Positions 8,934 through 52,200 of a stretch of 64,000 bases of DNA are shown here, piece after piece. A program made the translations under genes and the position numbers. The stretch lies in sequence record LC727699.1, one strand, 5' to 3'. Each line of letters opens with the position of its first letter. The stretch's first letter is position 1. The notes beneath the pieces are model-generated. The model was not told the DNA's origin, ran no database searches, and worked only from the letters and a program-made list of their open reading frames with translations.

Positions 8934-9848
8934 ATGTTTAACATCCATAAATACGCTAAAAGTATTTCACTAGAAAATGATTGTCAGGATCTAATTGAAT
9001 CTGACAATATTGTTAATGATGATATTAGTTTAGTACAAGTTGATCCAAAACAACAGCTTGTAGATATTACTGAGACTATTTCTCAAGAAGCTAATTTCGC
9101 AACAAACGCTATTAACATTATCAATAAACGCGGTGCTAATTTTGCTATCGCTGCTCGTAATGCATTTACGTCGATGACTAACTGGAGTAATCAAATTATT
9201 CCTGAGTTCCATCCAGCGCAGATGCGCCATTTAGTTTCACACATTGATTATTTAGAAGTAGCAAATACAATCGTGCCACAACCAGTTGGTTTTAATGGTG
9301 AGATTCCAGACTATGTTGATTATCTATTAACAGAAGCTAAGGAAATGGCCACTATTATTCCAGCGGTATTAGACCCGGTTAAAGCACAACTTGGATATTA
9401 TCTACAACAGCGTGCTGATCGAATGGATAAGCGTGGCTTTGCTAATTCATTTGCAATGGCATCGATCAATGATCTTGCTAAAGATGCTTCTTTCTATGAC
9501 AGTGACAACCGGTCAAGTACAGCTGAGTTTGGTAAGCTTTACCCATCATTAAATTCATTTGTTGACGCAACAAAGAAAATGAACGATATTCGTAGCATTT
9601 TATCACGGGTTCGTCCAAATGATGTAAAACGTGCTTCAGAAGCGCTTAGTCAATTAATTGATAGCTTTATGGAGGATGTTAAGGATAGTAACTCTGACAC
9701 CTCTCCAGAGCTATTACAGACATTAATTGAAGGGGTTACATGGGCAGCAGACCATGTTGAACGTTATTCAACACTCTTTACTAAGATTGTTGAGACTGCG
9801 AACACAATGAAAGCCACTGAAGATATTCTTCGTGAAATCATTGGATAA
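8934..9848 (+). CDS. Internal head/virion protein (phiKZ gp153-like)
   Basis: N-terminal SISLE head-protease-type site followed by an acidic segment; helical body; divergent from uvsX as in phiKZ-like phages. Confidence 0.6.
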   Translation: MFNIHKYAKSISLENDCQDLIESDNIVNDDISLVQVDPKQQLVDITETISQEANFATNAINIINKRGANFAIAARNAFTSMTNWSNQIIPEFHPAQMRHLVSHIDYLEVANTIVPQPVGFNGEIPDYVDYLLTEAKEMATIIPAVLDPVKAQLGYYLQQRADRMDKRGFANSFAMASINDLAKDASFYDSDNRSSTAEFGKLYPSLNSFVDATKKMNDIRSILSRVRPNDVKRASEALSQLIDSFMEDVKDSNSDTSPELLQTLIEGVTWAADHVERYSTLFTKIVETANTMKATEDILREIIG

Positions 9849-16704: not shown

Positions 16705-18273
16705 ATGGCTAAGAAAAAAACAGTTCCCGCAATGGATTTCTTTGCAAGTCTTGAGCGCGTTTCTGATGCTGAAGATAAGAATGTCAATCTTGATGTTGGT
16801 AAAGAATTACCAGAACAATTAAAAGATGATGAAGATGGTAAAGTAAATCCATGTGATGAAGTTACCAATGTCGTTACCAATACCCCAATTGACGTATGCA
16901 AAGGTCCAGATGTTGATGGAACTGCTGATAAGATCAATGATAAGAAGATTCATGTTAGTCAAGGGCTAAAAGAATTCCAAGTAGCTAAAGGTGATCGTGT
17001 TGAAAACGAAATCACTGAAACAGCTGATGAAATGATCACTAAAGTAAGTGATACTAAAGATCTTAATGTTAGTACCAAAAAACCACACCAAATTGCAGAT
17101 GTCCCATCGAATGAAGACATTTCTATTATGGAAGCCAATGAGACTGAGCAGCTAGACCATGGCTATGATGCCACCGCACTACTGGAAACTACTGAAGATA
17201 TCATCACTGGTGAACTAGATGATCATCTAGAATCATTATCAGTTGAAATGTTTACAATTGTAAATGAACTGACTAAAGTAGAATCTGTTCAAACTGCATT
17301 AGAAAACTATATTGGTTTAGTTAGTAACCGCCATCATCGCGGGCATGATGTCGATCATGATCTAGCTAAAGCTATTAGCATCGCGCTAGAGTCATTTGAC
17401 TATAAATATTTTAATAACACTGTGCCATCAATGGAATCCTTTATATCACCGCTAACTCGGCCTAAAGCTTCTATTGAAGTATTAGATAATCTACAAGCTA
17501 AAGCAAAAGAAGTATCTACTGTTGCATTAGATTTCATTAAGAAGCTAATTCGCATTGTTGTAGAAACTTATCAACGTATTCGCCAGAATGTCAGTAATCA
17601 AATAGAACGCGTTAATAAGATCATGAAACGCGTTAAAGAGAATGAACTACCCGATGAAGTTCGTACTATCGCAATTCCACGCGATCTGATTCTAGGTGAC
17701 ACTGGTGAGAGTTGGGTTGGTGTAGACCCTGTTCAGGGGGTTACTGTAATCCGTAATCTATTTGACAGCATTGAAAAGAATGGACTGCGTGCTCTTAAAG
17801 CAGCCTTAGCTGGAAAAACAACTGATGATAAAGCACTGGCTTTAGCTAAAGGTATGTTTGGAACAGCTACCAAAATTAATGCTAATGGTGTCCGATATGC
17901 TAGCCCGGTTGTGCCCGGTAATCGTGTTTATACCTTTGGTAAAGACAAAGCTGCGGTAGACTTCTCCATTCTTGATGCACCGGGTAAACCCAACTATGGA
18001 ATTACTGTTGAACTATTAGTTGATAAGAATGTTGTTATGGCTCAGCTAAAAGCAGTTCATAACCTCCTAAATCATCTAAATAATATTCGCGGTATCTCTA
18101 AAGAGTCAACTGCTGAAATCATTGCACAGATGACTGATAAAGAAGCAACCAATGTTGGTAAGGCTTATCTAACTGGCACCACTGAAGCTAGTAATGATCT
18201 GTTTAAATGTGTGATGATCTGGATCACCGTACTTGAGAAACTAGTTGATAGTGAAATCAAGGAAACTGAATAG
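16705..18273 (+). CDS. Internal head protein (phiKZ gp162-like)
   Basis: Very acidic N-terminal propeptide with many S/A-x-E sites (ASLE, SVE, ALE, SME), then a helical body. Confidence 0.7.
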   Translation: MAKKKTVPAMDFFASLERVSDAEDKNVNLDVGKELPEQLKDDEDGKVNPCDEVTNVVTNTPIDVCKGPDVDGTADKINDKKIHVSQGLKEFQVAKGDRVENEITETADEMITKVSDTKDLNVSTKKPHQIADVPSNEDISIMEANETEQLDHGYDATALLETTEDIITGELDDHLESLSVEMFTIVNELTKVESVQTALENYIGLVSNRHHRGHDVDHDLAKAISIALESFDYKYFNNTVPSMESFISPLTRPKASIEVLDNLQAKAKEVSTVALDFIKKLIRIVVETYQRIRQNVSNQIERVNKIMKRVKENELPDEVRTIAIPRDLILGDTGESWVGVDPVQGVTVIRNLFDSIEKNGLRALKAALAGKTTDDKALALAKGMFGTATKINANGVRYASPVVPGNRVYTFGKDKAAVDFSILDAPGKPNYGITVELLVDKNVVMAQLKAVHNLLNHLNNIRGISKESTAEIIAQMTDKEATNVGKAYLTGTTEASNDLFKCVMIWITVLEKLVDSEIKETE

Positions 18274-29988: not shown

Positions 29989-30801
29989 TTAACGCATGAA
30001 GCCAGGGCGCCTATGTTTAACTGGTGAAATATCCCAGCCAAGACTTTTCGCTAGATCTGTCACATTGGTGATATCAGAACATTCAAAACCCATGTTAATT
30101 TGACGTTCACGTTCACGCTGTACCTGATATAGAGTATCAGGCGTGATAACCATTAATTGATCTTCATAGTTCTCTAATGCAGGGGAATTCCATTTATTAG
30201 CACCGTAAATACCACCTTCCCCAACCATATCCCAAGTTGAAATCTCACGGGTATATTTGATACCGCGCATAGGATCATCTTGAGTTATTGACCTTACCGA
30301 GCAATAAGTATTCTGAGAAGGATTGGTAATAGATGCTTCGAAGTACTTACCAAAAGGACCGTATGGTTTGCATTTGCCAAGTACTAGTTTAATAGGAAGA
30401 CCTTTCTCATCTGTAGAATCAACCAGAATAAGTTCCTTAATATGCGCACACACACGATCATCATCGATTTGACGAATGCGCATTAGGTACTCGTGTTCAT
30501 TCATCCGTGTGCCATCTTTACGATAGGGTTCAGGGTGTTTGTATTCCATGAATAGAACACCCTTTTTAACACGACGCATTAAAGGTGAGTCTGGATTAAA
30601 CATAGATACGCCGGATGCCATTTCATAGAACATACCAGCTGAATTTCGGGTACCATAAGCTCCTAGTGGAGTTAGATAGTAACCATCCGCATCAGGCACT
30701 AATACACCTTTTTTATTAGTACCGGCTAACATATCACTGCCGATAACTACTTGGTTATTAGTACGCTGTTGCAAACCAGAAAAATTAGAATATGGTTGCA
30801 T
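29989..30801 (-). CDS. Prohead (head maturation) serine protease (phiKZ gp175-like)
   Basis: EYKHP (His), CSVRS (Ser) and TWDMVGEGGI motifs; self-cleavage-type SPALE before a C-terminal tail. Confidence 0.85.
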   Translation of the reverse strand: MQPYSNFSGLQQRTNNQVVIGSDMLAGTNKKGVLVPDADGYYLTPLGAYGTRNSAGMFYEMASGVSMFNPDSPLMRRVKKGVLFMEYKHPEPYRKDGTRMNEHEYLMRIRQIDDDRVCAHIKELILVDSTDEKGLPIKLVLGKCKPYGPFGKYFEASITNPSQNTYCSVRSITQDDPMRGIKYTREISTWDMVGEGGIYGANKWNSPALENYEDQLMVITPDTLYQVQRERERQINMGFECSDITNVTDLAKSLGWDISPVKHRRPGFMR

Positions 30802-40894: not shown

Positions 40895-40969
40895 TTTCTA
40901 TTTTCCTATTTTGGTAATACTAAGTTAAACAACGATATGATACTTTACTAATCGTCAATGGAGTTTAAT

Positions 40970-49733
<8,764 letters not shown>

Positions 49734-49791
49734 ATACTTGGAATAGTTATTTATTGTAACCATTCTTAAACCAATGTAATAGGTAATTAAC

Positions 49792-50097
49792 ATGTCTCTA
49801 CTTAAAAAGATCGGTCTAGCTTTAATTGGATCAGAAGGACGTAAGGAAGTTTTTGAACAAGAATTAACTAAACTATCAAATTCTAATGCAGTTATTGATC
49901 AAATGGTGATTAATTTACTGGGTAGTAAGAAGAAGTTAGATGACTTCCTAATTAAAGCTGAAGAAATTGATAATAAGAAACTAGGCTTCATTAAAAATCG
50001 AGCCGAACTTATTAAACTAGTCAAATCTAAATATTCACAAGACCCTCGGGTTGCCGATGTAGTAGTGTCACTTTACATTGGTGGTTTCATTTATTGA
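49792..50097 (+). CDS. Hypothetical protein
   Basis: 101-aa basic helical ORF. Confidence 0.65.
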   Translation: MSLLKKIGLALIGSEGRKEVFEQELTKLSNSNAVIDQMVINLLGSKKKLDDFLIKAEEIDNKKLGFIKNRAELIKLVKSKYSQDPRVADVVVSLYIGGFIY

Positions 50098-50104
50098 GGT
50101 AAGT

Positions 50105-50797
50105 ATGTCTAAACCTAATCTTGAGTGGTTAGCTTCCTTAGAAAGTAAAGAAGCTAAGAGTACAGTAGATTCTTCCGATATGGATAATGATCAAAAGGAA
50201 GGTAGCGATAAGTCTCAACAAGATGAAGCTACTGAACCTGAGAAGAAAATTACTGCAACTGATGTACAAATTGCAATTGAAGAATATGCGCGTATCCGTG
50301 CATTAACCACTACTAAAGATCTTCCAGCTGACCCTGAACCAGGCGATACTTATCATGTAAATGGGGTAGATTGGATTTATCAAGAAGATGGTGGATGGGT
50401 AACTATGCAAGGTATTTATGGCCATGAACATTTTGATGAAAATGGTCTAAATATTGAAGCAAGTGGCATTGACCAGAAATCAGGTGCAACTAAACGTTAT
50501 GTGGTAACTGGTTATAATGCTCAGACTAACCCAGCTGCTATGCCTGGTGATAACCTGACTGAATGCGTTATCCTAATGCAGAATGGACTTGTTCCAGAAG
50601 TTGGTGTAAATGGCCTAACTGCTGACTGTCTACTTAAAATCGTTAAAGATTTATTTGAAGGTTATCAAGCAGGCCCATTTGCATGTGAAGAGAATCAGGT
50701 AGTGATTAATTCAATGGACCGTGCTCTTAGTGCAATTCATCAACGCCTCGTAAGACGTAAAGAACAAGGTACTGAAGGTACCTATAGTGGTAATTGA
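50105..50797 (+). CDS. tad1: Tad1-like (Thoeris anti-defence 1) nucleotide-signal sponge with acidic N-terminal extension
   Basis: C-terminal ~118 aa: MQNGLVPEVGVNGLTADCLLKIVKDLFEGYQAGPFACEEN...ALSAIHQRLVRRKEQGTEGT follows the Tad1 pattern FQxG..LLxIVxDRL..FQAGPF..REN..AL..R...R....GT; GAGG RBS before the ATG at 50105. Confidence 0.75.
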   Translation: MSKPNLEWLASLESKEAKSTVDSSDMDNDQKEGSDKSQQDEATEPEKKITATDVQIAIEEYARIRALTTTKDLPADPEPGDTYHVNGVDWIYQEDGGWVTMQGIYGHEHFDENGLNIEASGIDQKSGATKRYVVTGYNAQTNPAAMPGDNLTECVILMQNGLVPEVGVNGLTADCLLKIVKDLFEGYQAGPFACEENQVVINSMDRALSAIHQRLVRRKEQGTEGTYSGN

Positions 50798-50804
50798 CAT
50801 AAAT

Positions 50805-50830
50805 GCCTCCCTTCGGGGAGGCTTTATTTC
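50805..50830 (+). terminator. Hairpin terminator
   Basis: GCCTCCC-TTCG-GGGAGGC, then TTTATTT. Confidence 0.8.
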
Positions 50831-50832
50831 GT

Positions 50833-50860
50833 ATTAAAAAAAATTTGAGATTTATATTAC
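50833..50860 (+). promoter_or_regulatory. Putative phage early promoter
   Basis: ATTAAAAAAAATTTGAGATTTATATTAC; third copy of the A-tract + AGAT-N-TATATTAC motif, heading the accessory region. Confidence 0.7.
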
Positions 50861-50905
50861 TAGTGTGTAATTAGGAAACCATCTATCTAGTAAAGAGGAA
50901 TCACA

Positions 50906-51460
50906 ATGAGCGTTGTAATTTTCACTGCCAGACCTATTGGTTATAAAGTTCCTGGCGCTAATTCCACTGTAAATAAGTTTGCACTAAATACAGCTAATGC
51001 ACCTAGTGTATATAGTTCTTCACCAGGATCACCAATTACTGCTCAGGAGAGTAGTTGTATCTATACACTCACTTCAAATCATGAGTTAATCGCTGGGGAC
51101 ACCGATAAAGATAACTCCCTAATGAGTTTCAAACTAGTGCTTGCGTATAATAACGATACAGCTAATTATCTAATTAGTACGCAGGTTATTGATAGTATCG
51201 ATAACCTAAAAGGAGTGGAAATTATTAGTGAACTCAGTTTCAGTGTAATTGATACTGGTGCACATATGATCCGTAGAGTGAATTCGATCGGTGTATGTGA
51301 GGCTGTCGCCGCTCGATGGTCTCCAGTTGCAATTGAACACGTGGCTAAAGCAACCGAGCGTGAGCACCCTGGTACTCCCATCGGTGATGCTCGTGAGATG
51401 ATCGACTCTGGTGAAGACCTGGGTGACGTATGTACTTCATATATCAAATCGAGTAACTAG
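50906..51460 (+). CDS. Hypothetical early protein
   Basis: GAGG RBS; first gene after the early promoter. Confidence 0.7.
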   Translation: MSVVIFTARPIGYKVPGANSTVNKFALNTANAPSVYSSSPGSPITAQESSCIYTLTSNHELIAGDTDKDNSLMSFKLVLAYNNDTANYLISTQVIDSIDNLKGVEIISELSFSVIDTGAHMIRRVNSIGVCEAVAARWSPVAIEHVAKATEREHPGTPIGDAREMIDSGEDLGDVCTSYIKSSN

Positions 51461-52169: not shown

Positions 52170-52200
52170 CAGTGGGTGCATTGCCCACTGGTCATTTTTT
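52170..52200 (+). terminator. Hairpin terminator
   Basis: CAGTGGG...CCCACTG stem, then GTCATTTTTT. Confidence 0.6.

Follow-up and report, generated by a model that had tools for sequence, protein, structure and literature searches.

The gp184 locus

The window, by which we mean the whole stretch of 64,000 nt analysed here (from sequence record LC727699.1), belongs to a phiKZ-type phage genome. A 3-kb stretch around the gene of interest matches Pseudomonas phage 'sp. LC' (LC727699) at 100% and phiKZ at 99.8%. The open reading frame at 50105-50797, which had been singled out from the raw sequence, is as it was described: it starts with ATG at 50105, has GAGG 5 bases upstream, encodes 230 amino acids and stops at 50795-50797. 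Its product is identical at 229 of 230 positions to chain I of PDB entry 8Y6V, the gp184 protein in the near-atomic structure of the phiKZ capsid. It is thus the same protein as phiKZ gp184 (NP_803750), encoded at the same genomic place after gp181-gp183, and the sole substitution with respect to the phiKZ reference is at residue 75, which is alanine in the window and threonine in the reference (codon 75, positions 50327-50329). PHIKZ184 is annotated in NC_004629 as 'structural protein'. The features of the locus, together with two other genes of the window that enter the argument, are as follows.

40958..50097, + strand: upstream genes gp181, gp182 and gp183 (ORF lists, annotation)
50096..50099, + strand: ribosome-binding site GAGG, 5 nt before the ATG (read from the sequence)
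50105..50797, + strand: gp184 (PHIKZ184) coding sequence, Tad1 precursor, 230 aa plus stop (ORF list, translation)
50805..50832, + strand: intrinsic terminator closing the gp181-gp184 string (hairpin and T-rich tail)
16705..18273, + strand: gp162 (PHIKZ162), internal head protein, used as comparator; its FFASLE17 is a published gp175 site
29989..30801, - strand: gp175, head maturation protease (270-aa ORF, annotated so in phiKZ)

The genes upstream of gp184 encode gp181 (the tail-associated lysin, 2241 aa), gp182 (664 aa) and gp183 (101 aa). All four genes are co-oriented and closely packed, with only 7 nt between the gp183 stop and the ATG of gp184. The string is closed by a hairpin (50805-50822) with a 7-bp stem containing 6 GC pairs and a 4-nt loop, followed by a T-tract; the tail of this terminator fits the conserved phiKZ terminator motif (Putzeys 2024). 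The next gene starts at 50906, behind an AT-rich spacer. The same arrangement is seen twice in this part of the window: the intergenic hairpins at 50805-50832 and 52173-52200 each run into a T-rich tail, which is followed by AT-rich sequence ahead of the next gene. The sequence-only reading had placed an early promoter at 50833 and considered gp184 to be expressed late. The region around 50833 is indeed AT-rich and is compatible with published descriptions of phiKZ early promoters, which give no more than an AT-rich element. A sigma-70 scan near 50833 found no match, the sigma-70 model being irrelevant to a phiKZ-type phage, and exact 9-mers from 50826-50905 showed no patterned recurrence. Since gp184 is found in the head, it must have been synthesised by the time of head assembly.

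The C-terminal Tad1 domain

The gp184 precursor is divided here into four parts, each of which is taken up below.

50105..50143, + strand: leader, residues 1-13, ending at SLE13 (site 1; motif conservation)
50144..50281, + strand: acidic spacer, residues 14-59, ending at AIE59 (site 2; composition, predicted disorder)
50282..50428, + strand: beta-strand capsid-anchor segment, residues 60-108, ending at GHE108 (site 3; model, 8Y6V, conservation)
50429..50794, + strand: Tad1 (Thoeris anti-defence 1) sponge domain, residues 109-230 (profile, Foldseek, pocket residues)

A likeness of the C-terminal part to Tad1 had been suspected from a few short strings, and these are present in the translation: YQAGPFACEEN at residues 187-197 and a tail of the form R..R..GT (R214, R218 and G222-T226), in addition to WLASLE at residues 8-13 of the leader. 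The likeness extends far beyond chance. A phmmer search of the PDB with the single gp184 sequence returned six Tad1 sequences, with E values from 2e-6 to 4e-6 over residues 117-226, and a profile made from gp184 and 20 homologues matched the Tad1 chains in the PDB with E values from 9e-13 to 1e-10. An AlphaFold2 model was computed from the 21-sequence alignment and has a mean pLDDT of 64; across the Tad1 domain the values per block of ten residues are about 67-95, with one block at 58. The modelled domain has strands at residues 116-122, 129-135 and 153-158 and helices at 173-189 and 195-220, and agrees with the published Tad1 fold, in which two long helices at the C-terminus come after an antiparallel beta-sheet at the N-terminus (Li 2023). 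Among the best 20 Foldseek matches to the PDB, all are CbTad1 or CmTad1, with a probability of 1.00 and TM scores (target) of 0.61-0.73, at 18-26% identity between gp184 and the solved Tad1 proteins. Close relatives of gp184 carry a precomputed match to Pfam family PF24729, which is named Acb2_Tad1_hairpin; scans of gp184 and the 20 homologues with our local copies of the Pfam and NCBIfam libraries gave nothing useful, and no match to PF24729. We conclude that residues 109-230 are a true Tad1 domain.

Ligand sites of the Tad1 domain

Residues of the characterised Tad1 proteins were mapped onto gp184 with two independent HMMER alignments, with numbering offsets fixed on the residues that Li et al. 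identify. Mutation of F82, N92, R109 or R113 of CbTad1 abolishes binding of both gcADPR and 2',3'-cGAMP (Li et al.). These four positions correspond to Y187, N197, R214 and R218 of gp184 in both alignments, and the last three are invariant among the 21 homologues. The C-terminal lid is also kept: G222 is invariant, while T223, E224, G225 and T226 are each conserved in at least 90% of the 21 homologues, and in the alignments they fall on the C-termini of CbTad1 and CmTad1, where the lid closes over the ligand. The pocket for gcADPR and cyclic dinucleotides thus appears intact, and binding of such ligands by gp184 is to be expected from its sequence.

The second ligand site is different. In CbTad1 the pair R90/T97, equivalent to R88/T95 of CmTad1, coordinates cyclic trinucleotides and contributes to the hexamer (Li et al.). 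The pair is E195/N202 in gp184, and CmTad1 residues K96, Q98, E99, M102, W103 and K106 align with S203, D205, R206, S209, A210 and Q213, so that none of the eight CmTad1 residues of the cyclic-trinucleotide site and hexamer interface is identical in the alignment. Because the pocket residues are kept, and the R/T pair and the interface are replaced, gp184 would be expected to bind gcADPR and dinucleotides but not canonical cA3; it is unlikely that cA3-type signals are bound as they are by CmTad1 and CbTad1. This does not affect its membership of the family, as the trinucleotide site is not family-defining and is found only in some of the characterised Tad1 proteins.

The residue that replaces the trinucleotide arginine of CmTad1 and CbTad1 is a glutamate in gp184 (E195, positions 50687-50689) and is acidic in nearly all 21 homologues. 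N202 is encoded at 50708-50710, and R206, at 50720-50722, is the counterpart of the interface partner E99 of CmTad1. One speculative possibility is that E195 and R206 represent a charge swap that would keep the interface contact while removing phosphate binding.

The N-terminal region and its candidate gp175 sites

The N-terminal region had been described as an acidic propeptide of the kind removed from internal head proteins by the head protease. Its composition is in accord with this description: residues 1-59 contain 15 D+E and 7 K+R (pI 4.3), and residues 14-59, the spacer proper, contain 13 D+E and 6 K+R (also pI 4.3). Residues 1-64 have pLDDT values below 50 in the AlphaFold2 model, and the spacer is predicted to be disordered. 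The echoes of the leader that had been pointed out elsewhere in the window also exist, namely FFASLE17 near the start of the ORF at 16705 (PHIKZ162) and SISLE in the ORF at 8934, which is PHIKZ153, annotated as a structural head protein.

The gp175 recognition motif [S/A/G]-x-E was taken from three published cuts placed on the fetched sequences: gp162 Glu17/Arg18 (SLE|R), gp162 Glu137/Asp138 (SNE|D) and gp120 Glu163/Asn164 (GLE|N). There are seven such triplets in gp184, five of them within the N-terminal 112 residues. We rejected this count as evidence, as shuffled sequences contain 2.7 +/- 1.4 (P = 0.10). The sites in gp184 are instead credible because they are conserved among homologues. 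At site 1 (SLE13), which lies behind a conserved W, [S/G]-x-E is aligned in 17 of 21 homologues, and the SLE context is the same as that of the published gp162 cut Glu17|Arg18. Site 2 (AIE59) is present as [S/A]-x-E in all 6 of the sequences that have the anchor segment. The best conserved of the three is site 3 (GHE108), between the anchor and the Tad1 domain, which the sequence-only reading had overlooked: [S/A/G]-x-E is found there in 21/21 homologues, as ten different tripeptides in an otherwise variable linker, and also in homologues that have no anchor segment at all. Conservation of the SxE-type sites, which had been named as a check on the proposal, thus speaks in its favour. It has also been reported that gp184 is cleaved by gp175 and that verified sites exist (Yang 2024, citing Thomas 2012 for the cleavage).

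The capsid anchor and location in the head

The anchor segment (residues 60-108) is predicted by AlphaFold2 to contain strands at 64-67, 82-85, 88-92 and 98-100. Only 34 residues are modelled in chain I of 8Y6V, and these superimpose on the gp184 model with an rmsd of 1.6 A at 97% identity (Foldseek). As 97% corresponds to 33 of 34 residues, the modelled piece must include residue 75 and therefore lies within about residue 42 to 108. The Tad1 domain is consequently not the part of gp184 that is seen in the shell. Yang 2024 described gp184 as a minor capsid protein, composed mainly of beta-strands, that fills the gap between gp86 and hexamer 1. Large parts of the protein are unresolved in that structure; the resolved stretch has one of its ends close to a known gp175 site, and what could be modelled falls short of the cleavage product in length, 'likely due to flexibility'. 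There are five vertex-binding complexes per vertex, each with ~1 copy of gp184 (Yang 2024), from which we estimate roughly 55-60 copies per virion.

These data place gp184 in the head, as had been proposed, and the part of the proposal that concerned a removable propeptide stands in so far as gp175 does cleave the protein. It is, however, more than a free internal head protein with a propeptide, since a 34-residue beta segment located between E59 and E108 is fixed in the inner vertex-binding complex.

Packaging, cleavage and injection

The identity of gp184 as a virion-packaged, injected Tad1 protein is already known. Fossati 2023 reported that gp184 interacts with inner-body proteins, detected FLAG-tagged gp184 in cells in which translation was blocked with gentamicin, and considered it validated as an injected protein; delivery at injection, as deduced earlier from the sequence, is therefore borne out. 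A transposon-mutagenesis preprint from 2025 calls the gene tad1, finds it non-essential, and says of the same gene that the N-terminus of gp184 is wedged in the capsid, whereas cleavage by the head protease releases the C-terminal end, which is injected. The predicted action against Thoeris and CBASS is likewise reported in secondary sources: according to a review citing Li 2024, phiKZ injects Tad1, which blocks CBASS and Thoeris, and other secondary citations of Li 2024 attribute anti-CBASS and anti-Thoeris activity of phiKZ Tad1 to sequestration of nucleotide signals. PhiKZ does not figure in the preprint that Li et al. issued in 2023. Tad1 is the sole known anti-defence gene reported in phiKZ by AntiDefenseFinder. 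Packaging, cleavage and injection of the sponge, as first inferred from the sequence, are thus supported and already in the literature. What is added here is small, and consists of the 21/21 conservation of the site 3 motif, the restriction of the anchor to one clade and a few relatives, the loss of the trinucleotide site, and the fusions to I-domain-like and cyclophilin modules described below.

The explanation that we favour is the following. The gp184 precursor, with its leader (1-13), spacer (14-59), anchor (60-108) and Tad1 domain (109-230), would enter the prohead and be cut by gp175 after E13, E59 and E108. The piece 60-108 would stay between gp86 and hexamer 1, and the cut after E108 would free a 13-kDa Tad1 domain within the head. 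The freed domain would then accompany the DNA out of the head and, ahead of phage gene expression, take up gcADPR or cyclic dinucleotides. Taken as a whole, that is, a four-part precursor that is packaged, trimmed by gp175 and supplies an injected Tad1 domain acting as a sponge for gcADPR and dinucleotides, we hold this explanation to be very likely. For the particular step in which the Tad1 domain is released by a cut after E108 the chances appear about even: the remark of Yang 2024 on flexibility would also fit a mature species of residues 60-230 that is not cut at E108 and remains tethered to the shell.

Such a tethered species is the core of the principal alternative, according to which gp184 is mainly a structural cement of the vertex, with the Tad1 domain held as 60-230, active if at all only as newly made late protein, and packaged incidentally. 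The fact that Yang 2024 ascribes the missing density to flexibility rather than to cleavage is in favour of it, as is the low number of copies per virion, about 55-60, which would be a small dose for a sponge. But the phage can do without gp184, whereas the core vertex proteins gp28, gp91 and gp119 are essential (transposon preprint), and Goslar builds its vertex-binding complex without a gp184 homologue. The tagged gp184 found after infection in translation-blocked cells (Fossati 2023) also speaks against it, as does a site 3 motif kept in all 21 homologues, anchorless ones included. We therefore regard a mainly structural role as improbable. Still more improbable, in our estimate, is a Tad1 fold that jumbo phages have turned to a different ligand or role, such as binding of some other nucleotide or of DNA or a protein within the head, in which case the Thoeris/CBASS label would over-read homology; the E195/N202 replacement of CbTad1 R90/T97, the differences at all eight CmTad1 hexamer-interface residues, the identity of only 18-26% to solved Tad1 proteins and the interaction with inner-body proteins (Fossati 2023) could be so explained, but the four CbTad1 binding residues are kept or conservatively changed, with three invariant in the family, the C-terminal lid motif is kept, and secondary sources report anti-CBASS and anti-Thoeris activity for phiKZ Tad1.

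Distribution and modular fusions

Full-length gp184 is found in 47 phiKZ-like Pseudomonas phages of the phage collection, with at least 95.7% identity. Phages 201phi2-1, phiPA3, PA1C, Phabio and their relatives share only the Tad1 domain with gp184, at 46-59% identity, and short Tad1 genes occur in Bacillus Bastille-like phages and others of the collection. The anchor segment, among the 21 homologues, is confined to the phiKZ clade and three metagenomic relatives. Seven viral contigs of 267-325 kb encode forms in which the Tad1 domain is preceded by 72-112 residues that are acidic and contain sites 1 and 3, while standalone Tad1 forms of 106-146 residues are mostly on smaller viral contigs, three being on jumbo contigs. 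The gene order gp181-gp182-Tad1 is seen at nine jumbo-phage loci. An exhaustive profile search yielded 4,462 representatives of the Tad1 domain at E <= 0.001, many with Tad1 as the C-terminal part of a longer protein.

Two of these nine loci, on jumbo contigs of 284 and 269 kb, encode a 134-residue Tad1 protein after homologues of gp181 and gp182 (L009:9941-10345 and L014:9920-10324, respectively). These proteins are without an acidic spacer, anchor or S/A/G-x-E site, and their first dozen residues resemble the phiKZ leader (L-x-W-L-acidic). From this form it looks as if insertion of the spacer and anchor had separated the Tad1 core from an ancestral N-terminal helix. Another variant, P0021 (300 aa), has the same leader and acidic spacer, and is matched twice by the family profile, best at residues 163-300; its N-terminal region appears partly duplicated. 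Two separate matches to the gp184 Tad1 domain are also present in each of NC_028999 (phiPA3), MK599315 (PA1C), PP968062, NC_070882 and LC765218, and these phiPA3-like phages may on this account have two Tad1-domain genes each.

In several longer proteins Tad1 is fused to an N-terminal module resembling part of the phiKZ major capsid protein. These I-domain-like/Tad1 fusions include P0100 (L037:165-1940), P0042 (L039:1067-2107) and P0091 (L040:130-1296), and also P0085, P0088 and P0078. The fused module matches residues about 247-471 of gp120, the phiKZ major capsid protein, with BLASTP E values of 4e-14 and 7e-12, and the Pfam family PhiKZ_MCP with E about 1e-20; Yang 2024 assigns residues 248-472 of gp120 to the I (insertion) domain. 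The fusions are on non-jumbo or short contigs (95.6, 8.1 and 1.7 kb). Such a fusion could be another way to attach the sponge to a capsid, or could just be a borrowed oligomerisation domain. A second type of fusion has a cyclophilin-type prolyl isomerase (PF00160, E about 1e-45) followed by a C-terminal Tad1 domain, and is found at L011:7451-8551, L016:9329-10333 and on L012, L015 and L017; two of these fusions are on viral contigs of about 310 kb. Directly upstream of the I-domain-like/Tad1 gene of L039 is a gene, L039:2-1063, with cyclophilin-like and I-domain-like parts, an arrangement which suggests that the three modules have been shuffled among neighbouring genes.

These architectures may be arranged in three types. 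In the first, a Tad1 core would be preceded by an acidic leader bounded by protease sites, as in 201phi2-1, phiPA3, Phabio and relatives; in the second, represented by the phiKZ clade and by a few jumbo phages from metagenomes, the acidic leader would be joined by the shell-anchoring beta segment; and in the third, a copy of the phiKZ-type major-capsid I-domain would be placed on the Tad1 core in unrelated smaller phages. Virion delivery of Tad1 might then be a modular trait that has evolved repeatedly, with site 3 as the release switch and loss of the trinucleotide pair as a specialisation for gcADPR and dinucleotides. We offer this generalisation tentatively, and consider it possible but doubtful.

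Relation to other sponges and injected proteins

Short Tad1 proteins, such as CbTad1 (7UAV, 7UAW, 8SMD, 8KBE), CmTad1 (8KBB-8KBD) and those of Bacillus Bastille-like phages, have the fold, the gcADPR/dinucleotide pocket and the lid in common with gp184. They differ in being only 120-140 aa, without a propeptide or capsid anchor, and are produced inside the cell, not brought in by the virion; they also retain the R/T cyclic-trinucleotide pair, where gp184 has E195/N202. Acb2 (anti-CBASS 2) is a sponge that shares with gp184 the hairpin module of PF24729 (Acb2_Tad1_hairpin) and sequesters cyclic nucleotides as a hexamer (Li et al.). It belongs to a different family from Tad1 and is expressed in the cell, and Acb2 structures are absent from both the sequence and the Foldseek matches of gp184 in the PDB. 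In their mode of packaging, the closest parallels within phiKZ itself are the inner-body or minor capsid proteins gp93 and gp162. Like gp184, they have an N-terminal segment interlaced with the inner face of the capsid and [S/G]-x-E sites at which gp175 cuts them, and their C-terminal parts are injected. The injected parts of these two proteins are helix-rich inner-body domains and not a nucleotide sponge, and their copy number is higher than that of gp184.

The same logic as that of gp184 is found in the internal protein I* (IPI*) of T4, an anti-defence protein whose leader targets it to the capsid. The prohead protease trims it within the head, and it is injected along with the DNA, so as to block a host defence ahead of phage gene expression. 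Its fold is unrelated to that of Tad1, and it acts as an inhibitor of a restriction enzyme by direct binding; moreover it is a free internal protein, unlike gp184, which is partly built into the shell. There are few known cases of such pre-packaged counter-defence, and phiKZ Tad1 stands alongside T4 IPI* among them.

The raw sequence of this locus was by itself sufficient to yield a mechanism that has otherwise been established by virion proteomics, cryo-EM, injection assays and biochemistry. For the phage, the significance of the mechanism lies in timing: Thoeris and CBASS can fire before any phage protein has been made, and a sponge that travels in the capsid and enters together with the DNA closes this gap.
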